Shown in pieces: positions 1-56,159 of a stretch of DNA of 64,000 nt. The stretch is from Podarcis bocagei (Eukaryota). How positions within the stretch are numbered: the stretch's first letter is position 1; every line of letters begins with the position of its first letter. The notes under the pieces were generated by a model. That model did not search any database. It worked only from the letters and a program-made list of their open reading frames with translations, and had not been told where the DNA came from. The position numbers and the translations under genes were made by a program. Location of the stretch: the NCBI GenBank assembly GCA_964188305.1, contig OZ076888.1, one strand, 5' to 3'.

Positions 1-3000
1 TTTACCATCAGGTCCATACAGATGGAGAATGAACGATTACTTATTGGAACAGGATGAGATTGTCGATAAGGCAAAGAATATTTTAAAAGAGTACTTTGAC
101 CTTAACCTCCATAAAGAAACTAAAATCAACGTGGTCTGGGACGCTAGTAAAGCAGTCCTCAGAGGCTTCCTGATCCAACAGAACAAATATAGAAAGAATT
201 TGAGAGAGGCAAAGAAGGAAGAACTAACTAAACAATTAAAAGAAATAGAGGATAAATTAACAATAAGCCCCGGGGACGAGAGACTTAAACAAATTTATAA
301 ATTATTACAAACCCAATACTCAACATTGCTGAATCAGGAAATAGAATGGGGTATAAAAAGGATGAAGCAGAAGTTCTTCGAATCAGCAAATAAAACTGGT
401 AAGCTTTTAGCGTGGCAATTAAGGAAAAAGCAAAAGCAAATGGTGATTAACAAAATTAAATTTGAAGACCAAATAATAGAGGATCCCAGCGAGATAAAGG
501 GAAAGTTCCTTCAATATTATGGAAACCTGTATAAAAAGAAAGAGGGAGAAGATATAAGTGAAATAGAAAGGTACTTGGATGGGAATGGAAATGAAGAATT
601 GTCCGATGAAGAAAAGGTATCCCTTAACGAACCAGTAACTCCAGACGAGGTTAGAGATGCAATAAAGAAAATGAAACCCGGAAAGGCCCCTGGTCCAGAC
701 GGCCTCTCACAAAAATACTATAAATCTCTAGAGGAACATTTGATACCGGTACTCTGTAATGTAATTAATAACATCCTCCAAGGAGGGGAAATACCTGATT
801 CTTGGAAAGAGGCACATATCACCTTAATACCTAAAGCAGATTCAGATACGCTTAATATAAAAAACTACAGACCAATTTCGTTACTCAACAACGACTACAA
901 GATTTTTGCAGGAATAATGGCAAACAGATTAAAAAAATATCTGAACAGAACAATTCACAAGGATCAAGCAGGATTCCTGCCTGGTAGGCAGATAAAGGAT
1001 AATGTTAGGCATGTAGTTAATATAATTGAATATCTGGATCTCAAGATTGATATACCAGCCGCCTTAATCTTTGTAGATGCCGAAAAGGCTTTTGATAATG
1101 TGTCTTGGCAATTCCTCCTTAAATGTATGGAGAGGGCAGGAATAAGAGGGCCATTCCTAGAAGGTATTAGAGCGATATATTCCAACCAGAGAGCGAATCT
1201 TATCATCAATAGTAACCTAACAGACTCATTCACGATTACAAAAGGTACAAGGCAAGGATGCCCATTATCACCCCTGCTATTCATCTTGGTTTTGGAGGTT
1301 ATATTAAATAAGATCAGAGGAACACCGGAAGTAAGAGGGATCAAAATAGGTAAAAAAGAATACAAAGTAAAGGCTTACGCTGATGACTTAGTAATATCAA
1401 TAGAAGAACCCCTAGAAAGGATAAACATAGTTATGGGCTTAATGGAGGAATTTGGGAGACTATCTGGGTTTAGACTAAACAAAACAAAAACAAAAATGTT
1501 GGTAAAGAACTTAGACGAACAATCGAAAAGCAAAATTGAGTTGGAATCAGGAATAAAGACATCAAAAAAGGTTAAATATTTGGGTATCTGGGTCTCAACT
1601 AAAAACATAAACCTAGTGGAGGATAATTACAATAGAATTTGGAAAGAATGTAAAAGAGACCTAGATAGCTGGAGCAGATTACACCTCTCATGGGAGGGGA
1701 GAATGGCCGCCATTAAGATGAACATTCTCCCAAAAATGATATTCCTATTCCAAAATATCCCAGTAATCAGGGGCACAACAATGTTTAAAGACTGGCAGAG
1801 GACCCTTTCCAGATTCATCTGGCAGGGTAAAAGGGCCAGAATTAAATATAAGTTGCTCACTGACAGAAGAGAAAGAGGCGGTTTTGGGGTCCCCAATTTA
1901 CAACTATATTATGAGGCTTCGTGTCTTTGTTGGGTTAAGGAGTGGATAGTTTTGGAAAACACCGACTTGTTGGATTTGGAAGGTTTTAATGCTAGGTTTG
2001 GGTGGCACGCGTACCTTTGGCATGATAAGGGGAGAGTGCATAAAAGTTTTTCTAATCACATTATAAGAGGGGCGTTGCTAGAGGTATGGAACAGATGTAA
2101 GAACTTGATAGAAAAAGACACCCCATTGTGGTTGTCACCCATTGATATCCCAGCAATTAAAAAATTAAATATGGAAGGTAAAAGGTGGACATATGCCGAG
2201 CTCTTGAAAAGATCTGAGAAAGGATGGGAAATTAGACCTTATGAGGAGTTAAAAGACAAACTATTGGGGTGGATACATTTCCATCAAATTAACTCTTTAT
2301 GGAACGAGCATAAAAAAGCCGGAATGAGTAAGAACAAGTCCAAATTCCAATTAGAAATAATAGAAGGGAAGTCCAAAATCTTAACCAAAATGTATAACCA
2401 ACTATTAGATTGGGACACAAAGGATGAGGAAATCAAGGAGGTCATGATTAAGTGGGCCATTGACCTAGGACACCCCCTAGATTATGAAAAATGGAAAAAA
2501 TTATGGAATAGGGATATGAAATTTTCAGCATGTGTCGGTCTCCGAGAAAACATGGAAAAGATGATGTACCGATGGTACATCACCCCAACAAAATTAGCTA
2601 AAATGTATAAAACCGGAGACAAGACCTGTTGGAAATGTAAAAAGAAAGAGGGAGACTTCCTTCACATGTGGTGGTCCTGTGAGGAAGTAAAGAAATTCTG
2701 GGGTGCTGTTTATGATGAACTAAAAAAGATCCTAAAGTATACCTTTCCAAAAAAACCTGAGGCGTTCCTCCTGGGAATGGTGGGAAACGAGATTAATAAA
2801 AATGATCAAACCCTATTTCAATACGCGACAGTAGCCGCTAGGATACTGCTAGCGCAGAATTGGAAAAAACCCAGCATACCTACAATCAAGGACTGGCAAA
2901 CTAAGTTAATTGAATACATTGATTTGGCAATAATGACTCAGAAGATAAGGCAACAGAAAAATATTAAATTTATTGATGACTGGAAAAAAAAAATTTCATA

Positions 3001-3279
3001 CATAGAGACAATGTCAGGAAACATCAAAATCACAATAGGTATAATATAAAAATCGTGAAGTAGAATAAGCGGGTTAATAAAGACACTGCGATACATATGG
3101 TTCAGATAGAGGTCACGTTGTGGTGGTGGTGAAGTCAAACGATATAAACGAATGTATATTGATTTTTGTATCTGTTTTGTATCTGTTTATTTTTCTCTGT
3201 TTTGTTTTTATTAATAAGGTATATGTGTTTTTTTTAGATATTGGATCATAATAAAAAATTTTAACGTGGAAAAAAAAAA
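1..3279 (+). mobile_element. LINE-1 element, 3' portion with 3'UTR, AATAAA (3250-3255) and A-tail (3270-3279); antisense to NYAP2
   Basis: ORF2 is followed by a T-rich 3'UTR, a polyadenylation signal and an A-run. The 5' end lies outside the window. Confidence 0.95.
2..3049 (+). CDS. L1-clade non-LTR retrotransposon ORF2 (end of endonuclease, reverse transcriptase, C-terminal CCHC), 5'-partial at the window edge
   Basis: The frame is open from nt 2 (LPSGPYRWRMNDYLL, the WxxN motif that closes the APE domain). RT motifs: KAPGPDG, YRPISLLN, DAEKAFD, GTRQGCPLSPLLF, YADD (1376-1387) and KYLGI. Zinc knuckle CWKC-x8-H-x4-C. No stops over more than 1000 codons. Confidence 0.96.
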   Translation, partial: LPSGPYRWRMNDYLLEQDEIVDKAKNILKEYFDLNLHKETKINVVWDASKAVLRGFLIQQNKYRKNLREAKKEELTKQLKEIEDKLTISPGDERLKQIYKLLQTQYSTLLNQEIEWGIKRMKQKFFESANKTGKLLAWQLRKKQKQMVINKIKFEDQIIEDPSEIKGKFLQYYGNLYKKKEGEDISEIERYLDGNGNEELSDEEKVSLNEPVTPDEVRDAIKKMKPGKAPGPDGLSQKYYKSLEEHLIPVLCNVINNILQGGEIPDSWKEAHITLIPKADSDTLNIKNYRPISLLNNDYKIFAGIMANRLKKYLNRTIHKDQAGFLPGRQIKDNVRHVVNIIEYLDLKIDIPAALIFVDAEKAFDNVSWQFLLKCMERAGIRGPFLEGIRAIYSNQRANLIINSNLTDSFTITKGTRQGCPLSPLLFILVLEVILNKIRGTPEVRGIKIGKKEYKVKAYADDLVISIEEPLERINIVMGLMEEFGRLSGFRLNKTKTKMLVKNLDEQSKSKIELESGIKTSKKVKYLGIWVSTKNINLVEDNYNRIWKECKRDLDSWSRLHLSWEGRMAAIKMNILPKMIFLFQNIPVIRGTTMFKDWQRTLSRFIWQGKRARIKYKLLTDRRERGGFGVPNLQLYYEASCLCWVKEWIVLENTDLLDLEGFNARFGWHAYLWHDKGRVHKSFSNHIIRGALLEVWNRCKNLIEKDTPLWLSPIDIPAIKKLNMEGKRWTYAELLKRSEKGWEIRPYEELKDKLLGWIHFHQINSLWNEHKKAGMSKNKSKFQLEIIEGKSKILTKMYNQLLDWDTKDEEIKEVMIKWAIDLGHPLDYEKWKKLWNRDMKFSACVGLRENMEKMMYRWYITPTKLAKMYKTGDKTCWKCKKKEGDFLHMWWSCEEVKKFWGAVYDELKKILKYTFPKKPEAFLLGMVGNEINKNDQTLFQYATVAARILLAQNWKKPSIPTIKDWQTKLIEYIDLAIMTQKIRQQKNIKFIDDWKKKISYIETMSGNIKITIGII

Positions 3280-6298: not shown

Positions 6299-8366
6299 TT
6301 GTGCAGTAGACAGTATGGCCAACTGAACAGGAGCTTGGGCCACTTGCAGCCTGCCCATTTTCTAGGTTCTGTAAATAGCTTTGGAACATCGATGCTCGAT
6401 TATTTATTTCTATTTTATTTTAACATTTTTTCTCTCAGAACACTTCAAGTCAAGCATGCCTGTATCTTTCACACATGCTCGAGAGCTTGTAACTAAATCA
6501 GATACCTATTAAAGGTGGATAGCAGCAGCCAAATAAGTAGTGTTTCATGAGGGTTTTTTACATAAAAAATAAACAAACAAAGAGTCAATGACAGTGGTAC
6601 AAGCACACTTTGGGATTCTAGACCTCCAACATCTGCCGTTGCATAAGTAACTTTATGAATGAAAATCAAATGTAGCAATTATTCATACAAATAACGATCT
6701 GCACAATTAAAACCAGTTGTCCAAAAGCTTAGCCACAATATTAATGTTTAGCTCATTTATAGAATGTGCCAAAAAGAAAAGTCTTCCCTTTATATGTTTG
6801 TTGAGATAACGTTGATCCCACATACATTGCATCCATCACACTCCCCCTCTCTCATACACACGTAAGTAGTGCCGATAACTGAACAGAAAATTGTGCTACA
6901 AGAGCACACACCTCCTGGCTCTTAGCTTCACACTCTGTGGCTCCCTAACGCTCATACTGACAGCATGCTAAGAGCATGGTAAATACAAGGATCAGGCCTG
7001 GATGCTCAGTTATAGCCACTGTTGACTTATATCTACAGTCTTCTCTAACCTATATTGCTGTATTTAAGTGAACGCAGTTGACTTTCTAGAGCTGTTAAAA
7101 TGTATCCTTGGATTTTACCCCAAAGAAACCCACACTTTAAAGCATTTCTGATATCAGTGATCTCTGAAAGATTGTTATTATTAGGGCTTCTGCTGCCAAA
7201 AGCTGGAAAAGTAAAAAATCTGATATCAGGAGCATATTTGGGTGTCCAAAAAGGATGACCAACTGATGATGATTTGTTTTATTTTCTTGACTATATTACA
7301 GGGTTTCTCTTGTTCCAGATTGCCTCTCTATCCAGGGCTTGGATACCTCTGTGTATTATGTTGCAGGTCATAGAACACCAAAGGGAATTTCAGTATTGCT
7401 CTAGCCCACAAAATGACTCCACTGGGGTAGTCTGAGGTGGTTAGTGTGGAAAAGTCAATACAAGCCTTGGATGCTACAGCTTGGTTGTCATCAGTATGCC
7501 CTAGAGGCTTAGATGATGGGTAAGAATTTTTACAGGATCCCTTTAGGATCTCTTCCAACTCCACAATGCTATGATTCAATGTCTTGTTTTAGAAACCTAA
7601 TCTATGGTGTTCCTTATCCCCATCCTATAAACTATCTCTTACCAGGAGTGAGAATTCACTAAAAGATATTGAGTGATTGATTTACCAATGAAAGTCTTGC
7701 CAATTCAATTACACAGTTGATTAATAATCAGAATAGCAGAGGGAAAGGGGGGAGTTATCACTTAGACAATACATTGTAAGACATGAAAGCTGGTATTTTC
7801 CTACAGGTCCTGAAAAAAATAATATTTTATGACACTTGCCCCTATTCCAATCTAAATATTTTTAATTAAAAAAACCAAGAACAGAACTTTCCCCAGCAAT
7901 CATAATTTTGCTTCATTAACCAAAGGAAAGATGTTATGCAATTATATATTATTTATACCTGACATGTGGCATGCAAGACGTGGTTAAGATTAAATGACAC
8001 TTATCACTGCCTACTTACAAAAGCTCCCTGGAGAGTCATGAAAGGGCATCTTGCATAATGGAGTCATCTGTTGAATTGCAGCCATTATTAACGGTGTGCA
8101 TTAAATGTACTGAAGGTGAACACCAGGTCTCTTAAAGTACTGGGCTCTGATAGCTTAGGTGTGCCTGAGGAAATTTTGCTTTCTTCTGGTTTAATTATGT
8201 TTTTATGTTCAAGTACTGGAAAAGAAAGATGTGTTCTCGACAATGAGTGGAGTCTTTGATCCACAGGAGGAGGAGAAGAAAGAAACCCACAGCAGGTTCT
8301 TACTGTAAGAAAAAAACATCACTGCTCTGTGTGAGAGGAAAAGGTGTTTACCATGACAACTGACAG

Positions 8367-8457
8367 CCACTGCAATCCTATGCATGTTTACTTGGGAGTA
8401 AATCCTACTGAACTCAATGGCACTTACTTCAGAGTAGACATATACAGGACTGCAGTT
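8367..8457. mobile_element. ~90-bp old palindromic MITE; related copies at ~12528-12582 and ~37620-37712
   Basis: Inverted ends ctgcaatcctatgcatgtttac...gtagacatatacaggactgcag; three related copies in the window. Confidence 0.6.
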
Positions 8458-8549
8458 TTAGAGACTCCAGTCATAATGAAGGTTTAAAGATATGCCCAAA
8501 AGAAAAGGACTGGCCTGCAAACTCTGGATGTTAAAAAAAGAAACAAATA

Positions 8550-8765
8550 CAGTCGTACCTGGGGTCCCGAATGCCTTGCAAGTTGAATGTTTTAGCTCCC
8601 GAATGCCACAGACCGAGAAATGAGTGTTCTGGTCTGTGAACGTTCTTTGGAACCCAAATGTCTGTTTTGGCTTTCGCAGCTTCCCATTGGCTGAAGGAGC
8701 TTCCTGCAGCCAATCGGAAGCCGTGCCTTGGTTTCTGAACGTTTTGGAAGTCGGACGAACTTCTG

Positions 8766-8816
<51 letters not shown>

Positions 8817-9826
8817 TTTATTTATATCCCGCCCTCCCCAGCCGAAGCTGGGCTCAGGGCGGCTAACAACAATCAAAATAATCCAACATTCTAAAAACAT
8901 TCATTATAAAATTAATTAAAATCAAATTAATGGCAACCATTAAGCAACATTCTGTGCAGATTGCCAGAGGAGGGGGTCAGGCTGCGCCCTGATCAAAGGC
9001 CTGGTGGAACAGCTCTGTCTTGCAGGCCCTGCGGAAAGATGTCAGGTCCCGCAGGGCCCTAGTCTCTTGTGACAGAGCGTTCCACCAGATTGGAGCCGCA
9101 GCCAAGAAAGCCCTGGCTCTAGTTGAGGCCAGCCTAACCTCTCTGTGGCCTGGGATCTTCAGGATGTTTTTATTTGCAGACCATAAATTTCTCTATGGGA
9201 CATACCAGGAGAGGCGGTCCCGTAGGTACGAGGGTCCTAGGCCGTATAGGGCTTTAAAGGTTAAAACCAGCACCTTAAACCTGATCCTGTACTCCACCGG
9301 GAGCCAGTGCAGCTGGTATAGTACCGGATGAATATGATCTCACAGCGAAGACCCCATAAGGAGTCTCGCCGCGGCATTCTGCACCTGCTGGAGTTTCTGG
9401 GTCAGTCTCAAGGGCAGCCCCACATAGAGCGAGTTACAATAATCCAGTCTGGAGGTGACTGTCATGTGGATCACAGTGGCTAGGTCAGGGCGATAGAGAT
9501 AAGGAGCCAACTGCTTAGCTTGGTGGAGATGAAAAATGCCGCCTTTGTTATAGCTGTAATCTGCACCTCCATAGAGAGGGAGGTATCGAAGATTACACCC
9601 AAACTCTTAATGGACGATGCTGGCACTAATTGCACCCCCGCAAGAGATGGGAGATGGGAGTTGCCCCCTCAATCCCATATCGCCCCGTCCCAGCCAGAGG
9701 ACCTCTGTCTTCGAAGGATTTAACTTCAACTGGCTCCCACGTAACCATCCAGCCACAGCTTCCAGACATCTGGTCAGTGTGTCTGGGGCCGAGTCAGGAT
9801 TCCATTTGACTACCGAGGTACCATTG
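8550..9826. mobile_element. Tc1/mariner (Tigger-like) MITE split by an L2 insertion; arms at 8550-8768 and 9797-9826
   Basis: Left end TA|CAGTCGTACCT and right end AGGTACCATTG|TA resemble the TIRs of the 242-bp Tigger MITEs elsewhere in the window. Confidence 0.75.
8769..9796 (-). mobile_element. 5'-truncated L2 LINE with (ATT)n tail
   Basis: Minus-strand peptide CLEAVAGWLRGSQLKLNPSKTEVLWLG (post-YADD region of an L2-type RT); microsatellite tail at 8768-8812; same 3' end as the copy at 59035. Confidence 0.85.
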
Positions 9827-10151
9827 TAAAGGAGATTTTGTATAAAGAAAACCCAAAACAATTGGGAGTCTGATTGGAAAGAACTGTTAGATCATAGGAA
9901 TCTGCCTGATAGTGAGTCAGACTTTTATTCATCCAACTCAGTTTTATTGCCTTTGCTGATTGGAAGCTGCTCTCCAGGATCTCAAACAGGGGTCATTTGC
10001 AGACCCTCTTTGAGATTTTGGGGATCAAACCTGGGACCTTTCACATGCAGAGCCGATGCTCTGCCACTGAGTTTTGCTTCATGGCCTTTCAACCCCATGA
10101 GCTCCTTAGGATTAGGATCATATGCTAGGCAACACTTTCTGTCCATCTAGC

Positions 10152-10290
10152 CCAGCTTTCCCCAACCTGACGCTATCCAGATACTTTGAGCTACAAGTTG
10201 CATAATCTCTGGCCACTAGCCTTGCTTGTTGGGGCTGATGGGAGATGAAATCCAGAAGAAAGTCGAGGGCACCAGGCTGGAGAAGACTGG
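10152..10290. mobile_element. Degenerate hAT MITE
   Basis: cagctttccccaacctg...tccagatactttgagctacaa...ctgatgggag...caccaggctggagaagactg. Confidence 0.6.
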
Positions 10291-34521: not shown

Positions 34522-35005
34522 TTTTTTTTTTTTTAAAAAAAATGATATTTATTGAAAAAAAGAATTTTTTAAAAAAAATTACAAAGAAAAAAGACAAAAG
34601 CAGAAAACAGAAAAATAAAAAAATAAAACCATCATTTTCAAATTCTCCACATTCATTACCTTCTTTCCATGACCTCCTCCTCCTCCCATCTCTTGTATCT
34701 TGATTAATAATTGTCACAGCAAATCCTTTCCATAATTCATAATATTCCGTCATTACATTACCTTACTCTATTTTCATCTTATCTTATAAAAAACCTTAAA
34801 ACTTAAATCTTATTTTTACCAGCTTCTCATAACCATTACCTTTTTACCTAATTCTTTAAACATTTTTACAAGAGCCAAGTAATTTCATTTCAACATTTTT
34901 CCAACGTTCATAAAACATTTCTAATAATAATAATAAAAAGAGAATAAAGACAATCCAATCTTCTTCCAGCGTCCCCCCCCCCCCCCCCGATCCTGGGATT
35001 GTCAG
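34522..35005 (-). mobile_element. 5'-truncated L1-type 3' end related to the 53611-55727 element
   Basis: Poly(T) at 34522. The minus strand shares gaaaggactgacaa, ggaagaagattgga and ggaggaggtc blocks with 55240-55525. Candidate TSD tcctttcc at 34514-34521 / 35006-35013. Confidence 0.8.
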
Positions 35006-35224
35006 TCCTTTCCAAGATAGGGTCTCACCTGGGATAGAGGCATTAACATGAAAAAAGGTGTTGATGGCCCATCTAAGAGGAATCTTGGGCCTGGGCACAC
35101 AGAGATTGCCATGGTGATTGGGGGGGGGGTGTTCAAAGTGACAGGAAAGCAGAGTCTATAGAGGAAGGTGTGCTGGGAAAAAGAAGGGGAGAAGAAAGAC
35201 TGAGATCCATCTTTGACCCCAGTA

Positions 35225-35466
35225 CAGTGGTACCTCAGGTTAAGTACTTAATTCGTTCTGGAGGTCCCTTCTTAACCTGAAACGGTTCTTAACCTGAAGC
35301 ACCACTTTAGCTAATGGGGCCTCCTGCTGCTGCCGCACTGCCAGAGCACGATTTCTGTTCTCATCGTGAAGCAAAGTTCTTAACCTGAAGCACTATTTTT
35401 GGGTTAGTGGAGTCTGTAACCTGAAGCATATGTAACCTGAAGCGTATGTAACCTGAGGTACCACTG
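35225..35466. mobile_element. 242-bp Tigger-like MITE (opposite orientation to the other two)
   Basis: CAGTGGTACCTCAGGTTA TIRs; TA TSD. Confidence 0.93.
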
Positions 35467-35521
35467 TACTGTACTGTACTGCTGTGTGGAACAAGCCCCA
35501 CTTGAAATCACCATGCTGTAA

Positions 35522-53185: not shown

Positions 53186-53397
53186 CTAGAGTGATGTGCA
53201 TGTTGGAATCAGCTCAATATAGAATGGTGGCAATGGTTTTCCTATAGAGTCCACAACACAGGAAAAGAGGACTGACAGTAGCCCAGACAGGCCCTTGAAA
53301 TTAATATGGGCTTCAAATATATCAGCCGTCATGCATCCCACTTTAGCAATCCCTTAGAGGCCTATGATAGAGGTAACAGACCCTGAACAGCGTAATC

Positions 53398-53610
53398 TAT
53401 TTATTATTAGGTTTATGCCCCACGTTTTGTCCAAGGAGCTCAGGGGAGCCTGCATTGTTCTCCCACTCCTTGTTTTATCCTCACAACAACCCTGCGACGT
53501 AGATTTGGCTGAAAGACTGTGATTGGCCCAAAGTCACCCAGGGAGCTTCATAGCTGAGTGACAATTTAAACCTTGTTCTCCAAGGTCCTAGTTCAGAACG
53601 CTAATCACTA
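53398..53610 (-). mobile_element. CORE/MIR-like SINE interrupted by the 2.1-kb retroelement; remainder at 55728-55755
   Basis: tttatcctcacaacaaccct...gcccaaagtcacccag...cttcatagctgagtg is reverse-homologous to 21232-21450. Confidence 0.75.
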
Positions 53611-55727
53611 GACTTCCCGGTTAGCGCCTCCGGCAATGGCGGATTTCCTCTGATCGGGAGGAATCCGCTCCGTGGAAACTAGGGTCTGGACCTCCACGGC
53701 GAGGCGGAGACCCACTAAAAACCACAGGCGGGAGAAGCCTGTGGACGTGGGATTCAGCTGGCACTTTTTGTGCCTCCCCTACTGGCGGGGAAACCCGGTT
53801 TCGGGGATCCGGAGCGACGTGGGGTGAGCGGCGCGGTGCTTCGAATCGACTGCTTCTTTCACGGAGTGAAGCCGCATTGCTGTTGCCGGAGAGCGCTGAC
53901 TTTTTCCTGTGGACAATTGGACTTTAAACAACTACCCGTGAGTAGAACAGAAAATTGGATCTTTAAACATCTTAATTTGGCACCGAAACGGGAAGGTTTC
54001 AAACAGGAAGTCCGCCTTCCTCTTTTGTAAATAGATTGAAGCAAAGACGTTGCAAGCTAAAGTCTGGAAAGCCTTTTGTAAAGGATTAAATCTCCATTGG
54101 TTAAAATTACTAAACCCCCCTTGGAAGCAGGAGAAGAGGGGGGAAATTTTAGATCGCCTAAGCCTGCAGGAGAGAGAGTGAAGAAAGATAAATTACCACC
54201 GTTTTGAACCTGGGAACGGGCTGCCAGTAAGATCAATGTTTTGGGAAAGTTCATTGACTGTGAATAAAACGTATGTTGACAGATAGTTAAACAAGAGAAA
54301 TATATTGTTTCCATTGTTTCCTTTTGCACTTAAAAGGGAGCAAAAGTAACTGAAAATCGAAACTAACTTTGTTGCTGGATCTGCGTTTAAAAGGACGGAT
54401 ACAAATAGAAATTGTTTCCCCTAGAGGGAGCTTTTGAAACTGTTGCAGGAGTGGAGCTGGGGAATTTTCCAGCTGTAGAGATTAAAGACCGTGAGAATCA
54501 GAGATTGACCTTGGACAAGAATGTTGACAGAAGAAGCCTTAGTGATTGCATTTTGCAAGACAAGTGCTTTATTGGAACAGCTTCATGAGAAGACGGGTGT
54601 GATGATTACTAAAATTGACTATTTGGGACAAAAAATGACTGATTTGGGACAAAAAGTGAATACCTATACAGAAACTACTCAGGAATCGATTCAGGAATCT
54701 GTTTTGACATGGCAAGCTGTGGAGAAGATGAATGAGAAAACTGTTGTAGTGGAGAGAGCCCTGGCCTTACAGAGGCAATTTGATGAACATAAGCTGTTGC
54801 CTTTTACGATTGAATCTAGAGAAAGCCAGATTTGGAGGGATGGAGTCCCGCTTGGATTGGAGAAGGAAAGTTGGATAGATCCCCTTATGCAGGGATGTTC
54901 TGGCTTTTGGGATCTGGCTTTGGGTCAGGGGGAGATTAGAGTTGTGGGGGCCTTTAGCTTTGGAGGGATTTTGAAACATGCTCTGAAATATCTTTTGGAC
55001 TTTAGTTCTGACTATGGAGATTGGGCTGACCTGTCGAGAAGGAATAAAGACATTGTTAGGTTGGAGTTTCCCCGAGATCTACTCCTCAGTGCCAAAGGAA
55101 GGAAATTAAGAACAAGATCAGCAGAAGATAAAGTAAAGTGTATGTATAAATATGAAGAAGATCTGCAGAAGGGACATGGAAAAGAGTTAAGAGCCTCGGA
55201 CAGAAGATCACCAGGTTGATGGACCATATGGAATTGATAGAAAGGACTGACAAAATCCGAGACCAGGGAGAAGAGACGGTGGAAGAAGATTGGAAAAAAG
55301 TTTAAAATTTTATTTAGAGAAATAATGTAAAATTAATGAGTGTTATACGGCTTTAGTAGAAATGTTATAAGGAGTTAAGTATAAATAAGTTTTAGGGTTT
55401 TAATGATAAGATAAGGTTAAAATAAATTAAGACAATTCAATGACAGAAAACAGTGAAAGATGGAAAGGATTTGCTGAAATAATTAATAACTAGAACACAA
55501 AAAAGGGAGGTGTGAGGAGGTCGATGAAACAAGTTAATGAAAGATAAAGATATGGAAATATTGGATGTGTTTTTAATAGTTTTTGTTTTTGTGTTGATGT
55601 ATTGTGTCTTTTGTTTTTTTTTTATATGTACTGTAATGTATTGATTTGTATTGTTTACTTTTTCTCTTTCTTTTTTACTTCTTTCTGTAATTCTTAAACT
55701 TTTAATAAATATTATTTTTTTAAAAAC
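53611..55727 (+). mobile_element. Full-length 2117-bp non-autonomous L1-derived (half-L1-like) retrotransposon
   Basis: 17-bp TSD cagaacgctaatcacta (53594-53610 / 55728-55744); CpG-rich 5' end GACTTCCCGG...AATGGCGG; a single ORF; a remnant of the ORF2 C-terminus; T-rich 3'UTR; AATAAA and a short A-tail. Confidence 0.9.
54521..55219 (+). CDS. Diverged L1 ORF1p-like protein, 232 aa
   Basis: N-terminal heptad/coiled-coil segment (KIDYLGQKMTDLGQKVN); RRM-start-like RESQIWRDGVP; CTD-like VRLEFPRDLLLSAKGRKLRTRSAED; occupies the ORF1 position in the element. Confidence 0.65.
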   Translation: MLTEEALVIAFCKTSALLEQLHEKTGVMITKIDYLGQKMTDLGQKVNTYTETTQESIQESVLTWQAVEKMNEKTVVVERALALQRQFDEHKLLPFTIESRESQIWRDGVPLGLEKESWIDPLMQGCSGFWDLALGQGEIRVVGAFSFGGILKHALKYLLDFSSDYGDWADLSRRNKDIVRLEFPRDLLLSAKGRKLRTRSAEDKVKCMYKYEEDLQKGHGKELRASDRRSPG

Positions 55728-55917
55728 CAGAACGCTAATCACTATACCATATTGATACCATATTTTGCTCCTACAGAGTTTGGCAGGTGGGAAGGACAGT
55801 TATATTTTGCTTAAAATAGAATGAGTCACAAATGTGCCCTTCACTTAACTGATACTGAGACATCCAAGAACTATTTTTAAAAATAAAATATTGCATTCTT
55901 GCTAATCTTTTTAACTA

Positions 55918-56159
55918 CAGTGGTACCTCGGGTTACATACGCTTCAGGTTACATACGCTTCAGGTTACACACGCCGCTAACCTAGAAATAGTGCTTCAGA
56001 TTAAGAACTTTGCCTCAGGATAAGAACAGAAATCAGGCTCTGGCAGCGCCGCGGCAGCAGGAGGCCCCATTAGCTAAAGTGGTGCTTCAGGTTAAGAACA
56101 GTTTCAGGTTACGTACGGACCTCCGGAACGAATTAAGTACTTAACCCGAGGTACCACTG
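55918..56159. mobile_element. 242-bp Tigger-like MITE
   Basis: CAGTGGTACCTCGGGTTA TIRs; TA TSD. Confidence 0.94.

Follow-up and report, generated by a model that had tools for sequence, protein, structure and literature searches.

The stretch of DNA analyzed here, 64,000 nucleotides of Podarcis bocagei (assembly GCA_964188305.1, contig OZ076888.1; hereafter the window), carries at 53594-55744 a retroelement in which an open reading frame (ORF) related to ORF1 of L1 is joined directly to the last codons of ORF2. The question raised by this locus is whether such a structure is an accident of one insertion site or the mark of a family that lacks endonuclease (EN) and reverse transcriptase (RT), comparable to the mammalian HAL1 (half-L1) elements. 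The evidence strongly favors the second answer: the locus is very probably a recently inserted, full-length member of a lacertid family of non-autonomous, HAL1-like L1 deletion derivatives that would be mobilized in trans. An independently derived lizard family of L1 elements without EN and RT had been proposed in the initial annotation, and the proposal is borne out by junctions that are shared among copies and by the similarity of every part of the element to lacertid L1.

The insertion comprises 2117 bp (53611-55727) and is flanked by perfect direct repeats. Its parts are listed below; L and P numbers here and in the following denote the loci and proteins with which it was compared.

53594..53610, plus strand: 5' target-site duplication (TSD), 17 bp, CAGAACGCTAATCACTA, 17/17 match to 55728-55744.
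53611..54520, plus strand: L1-derived 5' untranslated region (5'UTR) with presumed internal promoter; CpG-island-like over the first ~290 bp, similar to L1 5'UTRs.
54513..54514, plus strand: junction of deletion 1, family-wide; ~170-190 nt absent in the DNA alignment with L005 and L008.
54521..55219, plus strand: 232-aa ORF, a truncated L1 ORF1 according to phmmer matches to lacertid ORF1 proteins (ORF1p), alignments, the fold of a homologue and codon analysis.
54967..54968, plus strand: junction of deletion 2, family-wide; 42 codons of the RNA recognition motif (RRM) absent, with the same gap columns in all four short ORFs.
55215..55216, plus strand: junction of deletion 3; ~30 codons short of its natural end, ORF1 is joined to ORF2 at a point ~43 codons from the ORF2 end.
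55216..55346, plus strand: ORF2 C-terminal remnant, ~43 codons, out of frame with the ORF; similar to the L005 ORF2 tail.
55347..55727, plus strand: 3'UTR, L1-type; AATAAA at 55704-55709, A5 then C at 55722-55727.
55728..55744, plus strand: 3' TSD, 17 bp, CAGAACGCTAATCACTA, second copy of 53594-53610.

The TSD, described from the outset as perfect, is indeed identical at all 17 positions and is the longest direct repeat of the region, where chance alone would give about 2e-4 such pairs in 2.7 kb. The CpG-rich 5' end that had been reported is equally evident: 53611-53900 has a G+C content of 62% and a CpG observed/expected ratio of 0.98 (27 CpG), against 0.39-0.40 in the flanks. A YY1-like motif had also been noted there, and AATGGCGG is found at 53635-53642 of the 5'UTR; AATGGCGGA is identical in the 5' ends of three autonomous lacertid L1s (L003, L007 and L008), and its counterpart in L001 is AATGGCAGA, so that both autonomous and non-autonomous elements have this box conserved. 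At the other end the polyadenylation signal is present as described, while the A-tail exists as a run of only five residues (55722-55726) before the final C. A 17-bp TSD with A5 in the window copy, and a 15-18-bp TSD with A7 in L001, are hallmarks of target-primed reverse transcription (TPRT). An Rfam scan of 53300-56000, with E values up to 0.1, gave no match.

The same structure occurs at other loci. The non-autonomous family as defined here consists of the window copy, L001, L002 and L006, and its short-ORF proteins among the 12 phmmer matches described below are P0001, P0003 and P0004. L001, from the Podarcis lilfordi assembly GCA_947686815.1, is a full-length homologue that is ~73-80% identical to the window copy. 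Its TSD (TCTATGGCGTGTGGA) measures 15-18 bp. Like the window copy, the homologue begins with GACTTCC.GGT.AGCGCC, and the two agree in the ORF end and tail (CCAGG followed by TTGATGGAC...GATTGGAA) as well as in the 3'UTR, where identity reaches up to 80%. Identity between the two copies peaks at 53774-54069 in the 5'UTR (85%) and across the ORF end and tail at 55119-55306 (77-80%), a distribution of conserved blocks that would fit cis-acting roles for these segments. L002 is a more diverged copy with an identical junction between ORF end and tail, and L006, a further diverged member, carries deletions 1 and 2 on a contig that ends just before that junction. The ORF terminates in RSPG and a stop codon in all family copies whose contig reaches that far. 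Since both L001, with its own TSD, and L002 carry the junction between the ORF and the ORF2 tail, this junction is not unique to the locus and is a family trait rather than a local deletion.

The ancestry of the ORF was established through lacertid proteins. A phmmer search with the 232-aa ORF matched 12 proteins among 1.84 billion representatives, including lacertid ORF1 proteins of 340-360 aa at E values of 4e-18 to 1e-9. These proteins (P0005, P0007, P0010 and others) have a basic N-terminus and then a long coiled coil, and their C-terminal part contains the blocks NLRIRAVPE...FRLG...RDCLISLRSxEERDKIL, then IEIFKDIPK...FRWEFPQGLSF. In L003, 8 nt separate the stop of the P0005 gene from a further ORF that starts MSLQILTWNIRGLNSP, the start of ORF2 after ORF1 being MSLQILTWNIRGLN; in L008, an Exo_endo_phos ORF comes after the P0013 gene. 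Because an APE-type ORF2 lies directly downstream in both L003 and L008, the 340-360-aa proteins are the ORF1 products of autonomous APE-type long interspersed elements. P0005 was modeled with AlphaFold from an alignment of 23 sequences; pLDDT exceeds 80 over residues 57-312, and a Foldseek search with this model returned human L1 ORF1p structures as all of its top 11 matches (2ykp, 2ykq, 2yko, 2ldy, 2w7a), the best with E 1.2e-9, prob 1.0, ~205 columns and 22% identity. The relationship to ORF1p that had been suggested for the 232-aa ORF is therefore supported both by its phmmer matches (E 4e-18) and by the fold of P0005.

Other searches were silent about this relationship. Pfam L1 ORF1 models (Transposase_22 and related) matched neither the ORF nor any lacertid homologue at E values up to 10, and Pfam held no relevant model for the 232-aa ORF. 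The 232-aa ORF had no match in a word-index protein search or, with phmmer, among PDB sequences; in ESM Atlas features its best score was 0.88, with no family; and its single-sequence AlphaFold model, with pLDDT 33, was unusable. A sequence-profile search of the PDB with the lacertid ORF1p alignment matched trimeric autotransporter coiled coils only; the coiled coil of lacertid ORF1p contains N-rich repeats that match the stalks of trimeric autotransporter adhesins.

Outside the ORF, the element's 5'UTR shows 75% identity across 613 bp with that of the autonomous L1 in L008 and ~70% identity with that in L003, and in the alignment its 5' terminus coincides with the autonomous L1 5' termini. 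The parental ORF1, 5'UTR and 3'UTR matched only lacertid (Podarcis) sequences and Logan assemblies. Judged by these alignments, each segment of the element is derived from L1. The window itself contains the 3' part of another L1 (1-3280; from 29, cut by the window start), with an open ORF2 remnant of 1006 codons (RVT_1, E 1e-41) that shares 51-55% amino-acid identity with the ORF2s of L005. As this L1 has no DNA similarity to the element, it represents a different family and is not the parent.

The 232-aa ORF was confirmed as the single open frame of 54521-55219, the remaining two sense frames containing 16 and 20 stops. It consists of a coiled coil (~1-95), the first half of an RRM (~96-149) and a remnant of the C-terminal domain (CTD; ~150-215). 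Deletion 1, a gap relative to L005 and L008 that is common to 4/4 non-autonomous copies, covers the segment that in autonomous L1 holds the original start codon of ORF1 and ~50-60 codons of the basic N-terminus; translation of the 232-aa ORF begins at an internal methionine. Deletion 2 maps to beta3-alpha2-beta4 of the P0005 model (residues 200-241). Deletion 3, for which the ORF1 side was placed against P0005 and P0006 and the ORF2 side against L005, takes out the inter-ORF spacer, EN and RT, and the TGA stop of the ORF arises from the junction with the out-of-frame ORF2 tail. Conserved ORF1p residues are also replaced: NLRIRAVPE has become QIWRDGVPL and FRWEFPQGLSF has become VRLEFPRDLLL. 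The initial description of a strongly diverged ORF1 is thus correct as to divergence but incomplete, for the ORF also carries three family-wide deletions and is under strongly relaxed constraint. A complete RRM and CTD is not found in the 232-aa ORF, in which the CTD region is present with a dN/dS ratio (omega) of about 1. Because half of the RRM is lost, the predicted protein cannot be a normal ORF1p RNA chaperone; the coiled coil would be the candidate part if the protein acts at all. An origin of the three deletions by canonical GT-AG splicing was considered and set aside, inspection by eye having revealed no GT...AG at the breakpoints in L003, L005 and L008.

The sequence that follows the ORF derives from the C-terminus of ORF2, as first proposed, although not from merely its last ~30 codons: the remnant covers ~43 codons (55216-55346), and its frame, reading LMDH...DWKKV and a stop, starts at 55216 rather than 55217. 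It aligns without gaps to the window's 1006-aa ORF2 (29-3046), and the best local alignment falls exactly at the C-terminus, where 11/28 residues are identical instead of the 10/28 counted earlier. The score of this alignment is 54, compared with 30 +/- 4 for shuffled sequences, of which 1/2000 reached 54. The agreement with L005 (GCA_027172205.1) is closer. The tail peptide is identical to the L005 ORF2 C-terminus at 22/28 positions (E 2e-15), the L005 tail corresponds to residues 956-993 of ORF2 in a tblastn search, and a second L1 in L005 (14110-13592) has a closely similar tail that is contiguous with 173 residues of ORF2 C-terminus, themselves 55% identical to the window's ORF2. Relative to L005 2813-2935, one A has been added to the A-run after DWKK, causing a frameshift in the remnant, and the natural ORF2 stop is mutated from TAA to TAT. 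Similarity to EN and RT is absent from the element, in which the ~43 ORF2 codons are all that remains. An extended tail alignment had the ORF2-derived part reaching upstream to ~55165, across the end of the ORF; this placement was discarded, the ORF frame there matching ORF1p C-terminal regions such as that of P0006.

L005 also contains, at 8001-10161, an L1 deletion derivative in which the N-terminal half of ORF1 is fused to ORF2 residues ~513-649, followed by the same tail and 3'UTR. This derivative is the source of P0008, and its tail and 3'UTR are 76% identical to those of the element over 478 aligned positions. At 1-3300 of L005, a plus-strand L1 3' end (2813 onward) is directly preceded by minus-strand ORF1 and ORF2 sequence, an arrangement that looks like a 5' inversion by twin priming.

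Several points weigh against a trans-mobilized family. It rests on three junction-bearing copies, two of them with TSDs, and one partial copy. No intact autonomous L1 that combines this 5'UTR with this 3'UTR was found: the L1 of L008 is broken after ORF2 residue ~687 and has no 3' end, and L003, L004 and L007 are short contigs. The terminal A-run of the element is 5 nt only. The consensus target of the mammalian L1 EN is TT/AAAA, which the target site of the element, TT/CAGAAC, fits poorly. Finally, the ORFs retrieved from databases were ascertained for being open.

The last point bears on what, if anything, the short protein does. In codon-model fits, the four short ORFs have an omega of 0.66 (likelihood-ratio test against omega = 1, 2dlnL = 6.2), compared with 0.12 for four autonomous ORF1 genes (2dlnL = 374), and when both sets are restricted to 136 common columns, the estimates are 0.64 and 0.12; the codon-model fit was used for omega, pairwise NG86 and YN00 estimates of dN/dS being erratic or saturated. 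Differences are distributed nearly equally over the three codon positions in the short ORFs (0.43/0.42/0.45), versus 0.33/0.27/0.53 in the autonomous genes, where the third position has its usual excess. Constraint on the short ORF is much relaxed compared with autonomous ORF1. When the ORF is divided, the 82 codons of the coiled coil give an omega of 0.53 and the other 56 codons one of 1.05; neither sample is large enough to support a firm conclusion. The four copies, which differ by 33-50% at aligned codon positions, are nevertheless all stop-free; in a neutral simulation at 33% substitution, with indels not counted, the frame stayed free of stops in 1.5e-4 of runs. The reading frame thus seems to be kept open while the protein sequence is weakly constrained.

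One account of these figures is that the protein is irrelevant: the element would be a long RNA passenger similar to a short interspersed element (SINE), and its ORF a decaying relic that is open since the copies are young and open ones are noticed. The overall omega of 0.66, the value of ~1.05 in the RRM/CTD remnant and the nearly equal codon positions agree with this account, as do the loss of conserved ORF1p residues and of half the RRM, the pLDDT of 33 for the ORF on its own, and an ORF conservation no better than that of the UTRs. On the other hand, relics would not be expected to be stop-free in four copies as different as these, with neutral openness at 1.5e-4 even before indels, and both the likelihood-ratio test (2dlnL = 6.2) and the omega of 0.53 in the coiled coil speak for some constraint. 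We regard the relic account as a serious contender whose chances fall a little short of even.

Alternatively, the short protein could be a retained tool of a parasite, its coiled coil forming mixed trimers with the ORF1p of an autonomous partner L1 on or near the element's own RNA. Such co-trimers would bring the passenger RNA into the ribonucleoprotein particle of the partner, or would poison the partner; selection would then maintain the open frame and the coiled coil and let the RRM/CTD remnant drift. The proposal is made because of the contrast in omega between the coiled coil (0.53) and the rest (1.05), from small samples, because of the improbable openness of the frame (p 1.5e-4), and because of a predicted heterotrimer. 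In that prediction, ORF residues 1-100 and two P0008 coiled coils assemble in register with a score of 0.67, whereas the best of three controls scored 0.00; partner pLDDT is at least 76, and the runs share at least 83% of contacts. This mark was reached by 51/78 solved complexes and 2/108 mismatched pairs; the result signals likeness and not binding, as close relatives of true partners also pass. Co-trimerization is accordingly a speculative and rather unlikely role for the protein.

The remaining explanations concern the nature of the element itself, and all are far weaker. That the element is a retrocopy, whether of a host gene or of a domesticated ORF1-derived gene, instead of a member of a transposon family, might be suggested by Podarcis gene models with ORF1p-like parts (P0002, P0014 and P0019), but is very improbable considering that the 5' terminus is an L1 5' terminus, that the 3' end is an L1 ORF2 tail with its 3'UTR, and that no foreign sequence is left over. 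If a normal L1 had inserted here and then suffered a local internal deletion, the junction would be unique to this locus, and the window does hold only one full-length copy; however, the three junctions recur in L001, with a different TSD and in another genome, and in L002 as well, which leaves this history with practically no probability. Hardly credible, too, is the idea that the 84 nt after the stop are not ORF2 but continue the ORF1 C-terminus in a shifted frame (PYGID... versus PLGLD...), for although the +1 frame loosely resembles ORF1p C-termini, the tail agrees with the L005 ORF2 tail at 22/28 positions, the similar L005 tail continues into 173 ORF2 residues, and the shuffle test puts the tail at the ORF2 C-terminus.

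Some features lie beside the element or its relatives. Elsewhere in the 64-kb window, the element is matched only by a 5'-truncated 3' end on the minus strand at 34540-35020; this relative of the tail and 3'UTR (72% over 240 bp) begins inside the tail and terminates in A13, and its source is either another subfamily or the autonomous parent. The insertion site (53400-53610 and 55745-55800) is presumably an older SINE-like repeat. Near the element, a 16-nt unit, TCGGGTTACATACGCT, occurs in three tandem copies at 55928-55975, and an array resembling these repeats is found on the minus strand at 35400-35470. Among the proteins, P0002 and P0014, annotated in Podarcis muralis as 'TRIM39-like', have an N-terminal RING, B-box and coiled coil and a C-terminal half that consists of the L1 ORF1p RRM and CTD and is 61% identical to P0005; they could represent an exonized L1 ORF1 or an annotation artifact.

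Whereas the anatomy of the element, its ancestry, the shared breakpoints, the TSDs and the relaxed constraint are observed, the history of the lacertid family as a trans-mobilized L1 derivative is modeled on established L1 biology. An ancestral lacertid L1 would have undergone three deletions, one removing the ORF1 start and basic N-terminus, one removing 42 RRM codons and one, estimated at ~3.9 kb, that began close to the ORF1 end and left only the final ~43 codons of ORF2 in place. The deleted product, equipped with the L1 5'UTR, the ORF2 tail and the 3'UTR, would then have been amplified as a family. Transcription by RNA polymerase II would begin at the conserved 5' terminus, driven by an internal promoter within the CpG-rich 5'UTR, and the RNA would be polyadenylated at AATAAA. 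The ORF2 protein of a related autonomous L1 would carry out TPRT at new sites in trans, leaving 15-17-bp TSDs and a short A-run. Promoter activity, mobilization in trans and any role of the protein are thus presumed by analogy.

The closest known counterpart is HAL1 of mammals, a non-autonomous L1 derivative with ORF1p only that reportedly had several independent origins (PMC5753468; citing Smit 1999, Bao & Jurka 2010). Like HAL1, the lizard element is devoid of ORF2 EN and RT, retains the 5' region and the 3' end of L1 with a frame derived from ORF1 between them, and was amplified as a family with TSDs. It differs in having lacertid hosts and a lacertid L1 as parent, hence a separate origin, and the descent from mammalian L1 lineages that characterizes the HAL1 families of Repbase was not found for it. 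It also differs in that its ORF1p is not intact, having lost ~50-60 aa at the N-terminus, 42 aa (half) of the RRM and ~30 aa at the C-terminal end, with omega standing at 0.66, and in that it retains ~43 out-of-frame ORF2 3' codons. The lacertid family, as far as its sequences tell, apparently functions like HAL1 yet lies outside the mammalian HAL1 families. The internally deleted L1 at L005 8001-10161 shares the parent family, the tail and 3'UTR (76%) and an internal deletion, but keeps a mid-ORF2 block and has other breakpoints, whereas those of the present element are common to diverged copies. SINEs, SVA elements and processed pseudogenes resemble the element in their presumed use of L1 ORF2p in trans, their TSDs and their A-rich ends; the lizard element, however, is wholly L1 sequence, with an L1 5'UTR (a presumed RNA polymerase II promoter) and an L1-derived frame.

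Until now, elements of the HAL1 type have been discussed as a phenomenon of mammals. A literature search, which did not extend to Repbase and Dfam, found no description of HAL1-like elements in lizards. Such elements give rise to orphan 'hypothetical proteins' in lizard annotations, where the parental ORF1p is invisible to Pfam. A separate lacertid family would mean that L1 repeatedly yields ORF1-bearing self-parasites outside mammals too. The requirements of such a parasite could also be read from this family as from a natural experiment: half of the RNA-binding domain was discarded, and what was kept is the 5'UTR and the coiled coil, together with an open frame, the ORF2 tail and the 3'UTR. 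This may bear on cis-preference, on the role of passenger-RNA translation in the capture of ORF2p, and on the recognition of 3' ends in non-mammalian L1s.

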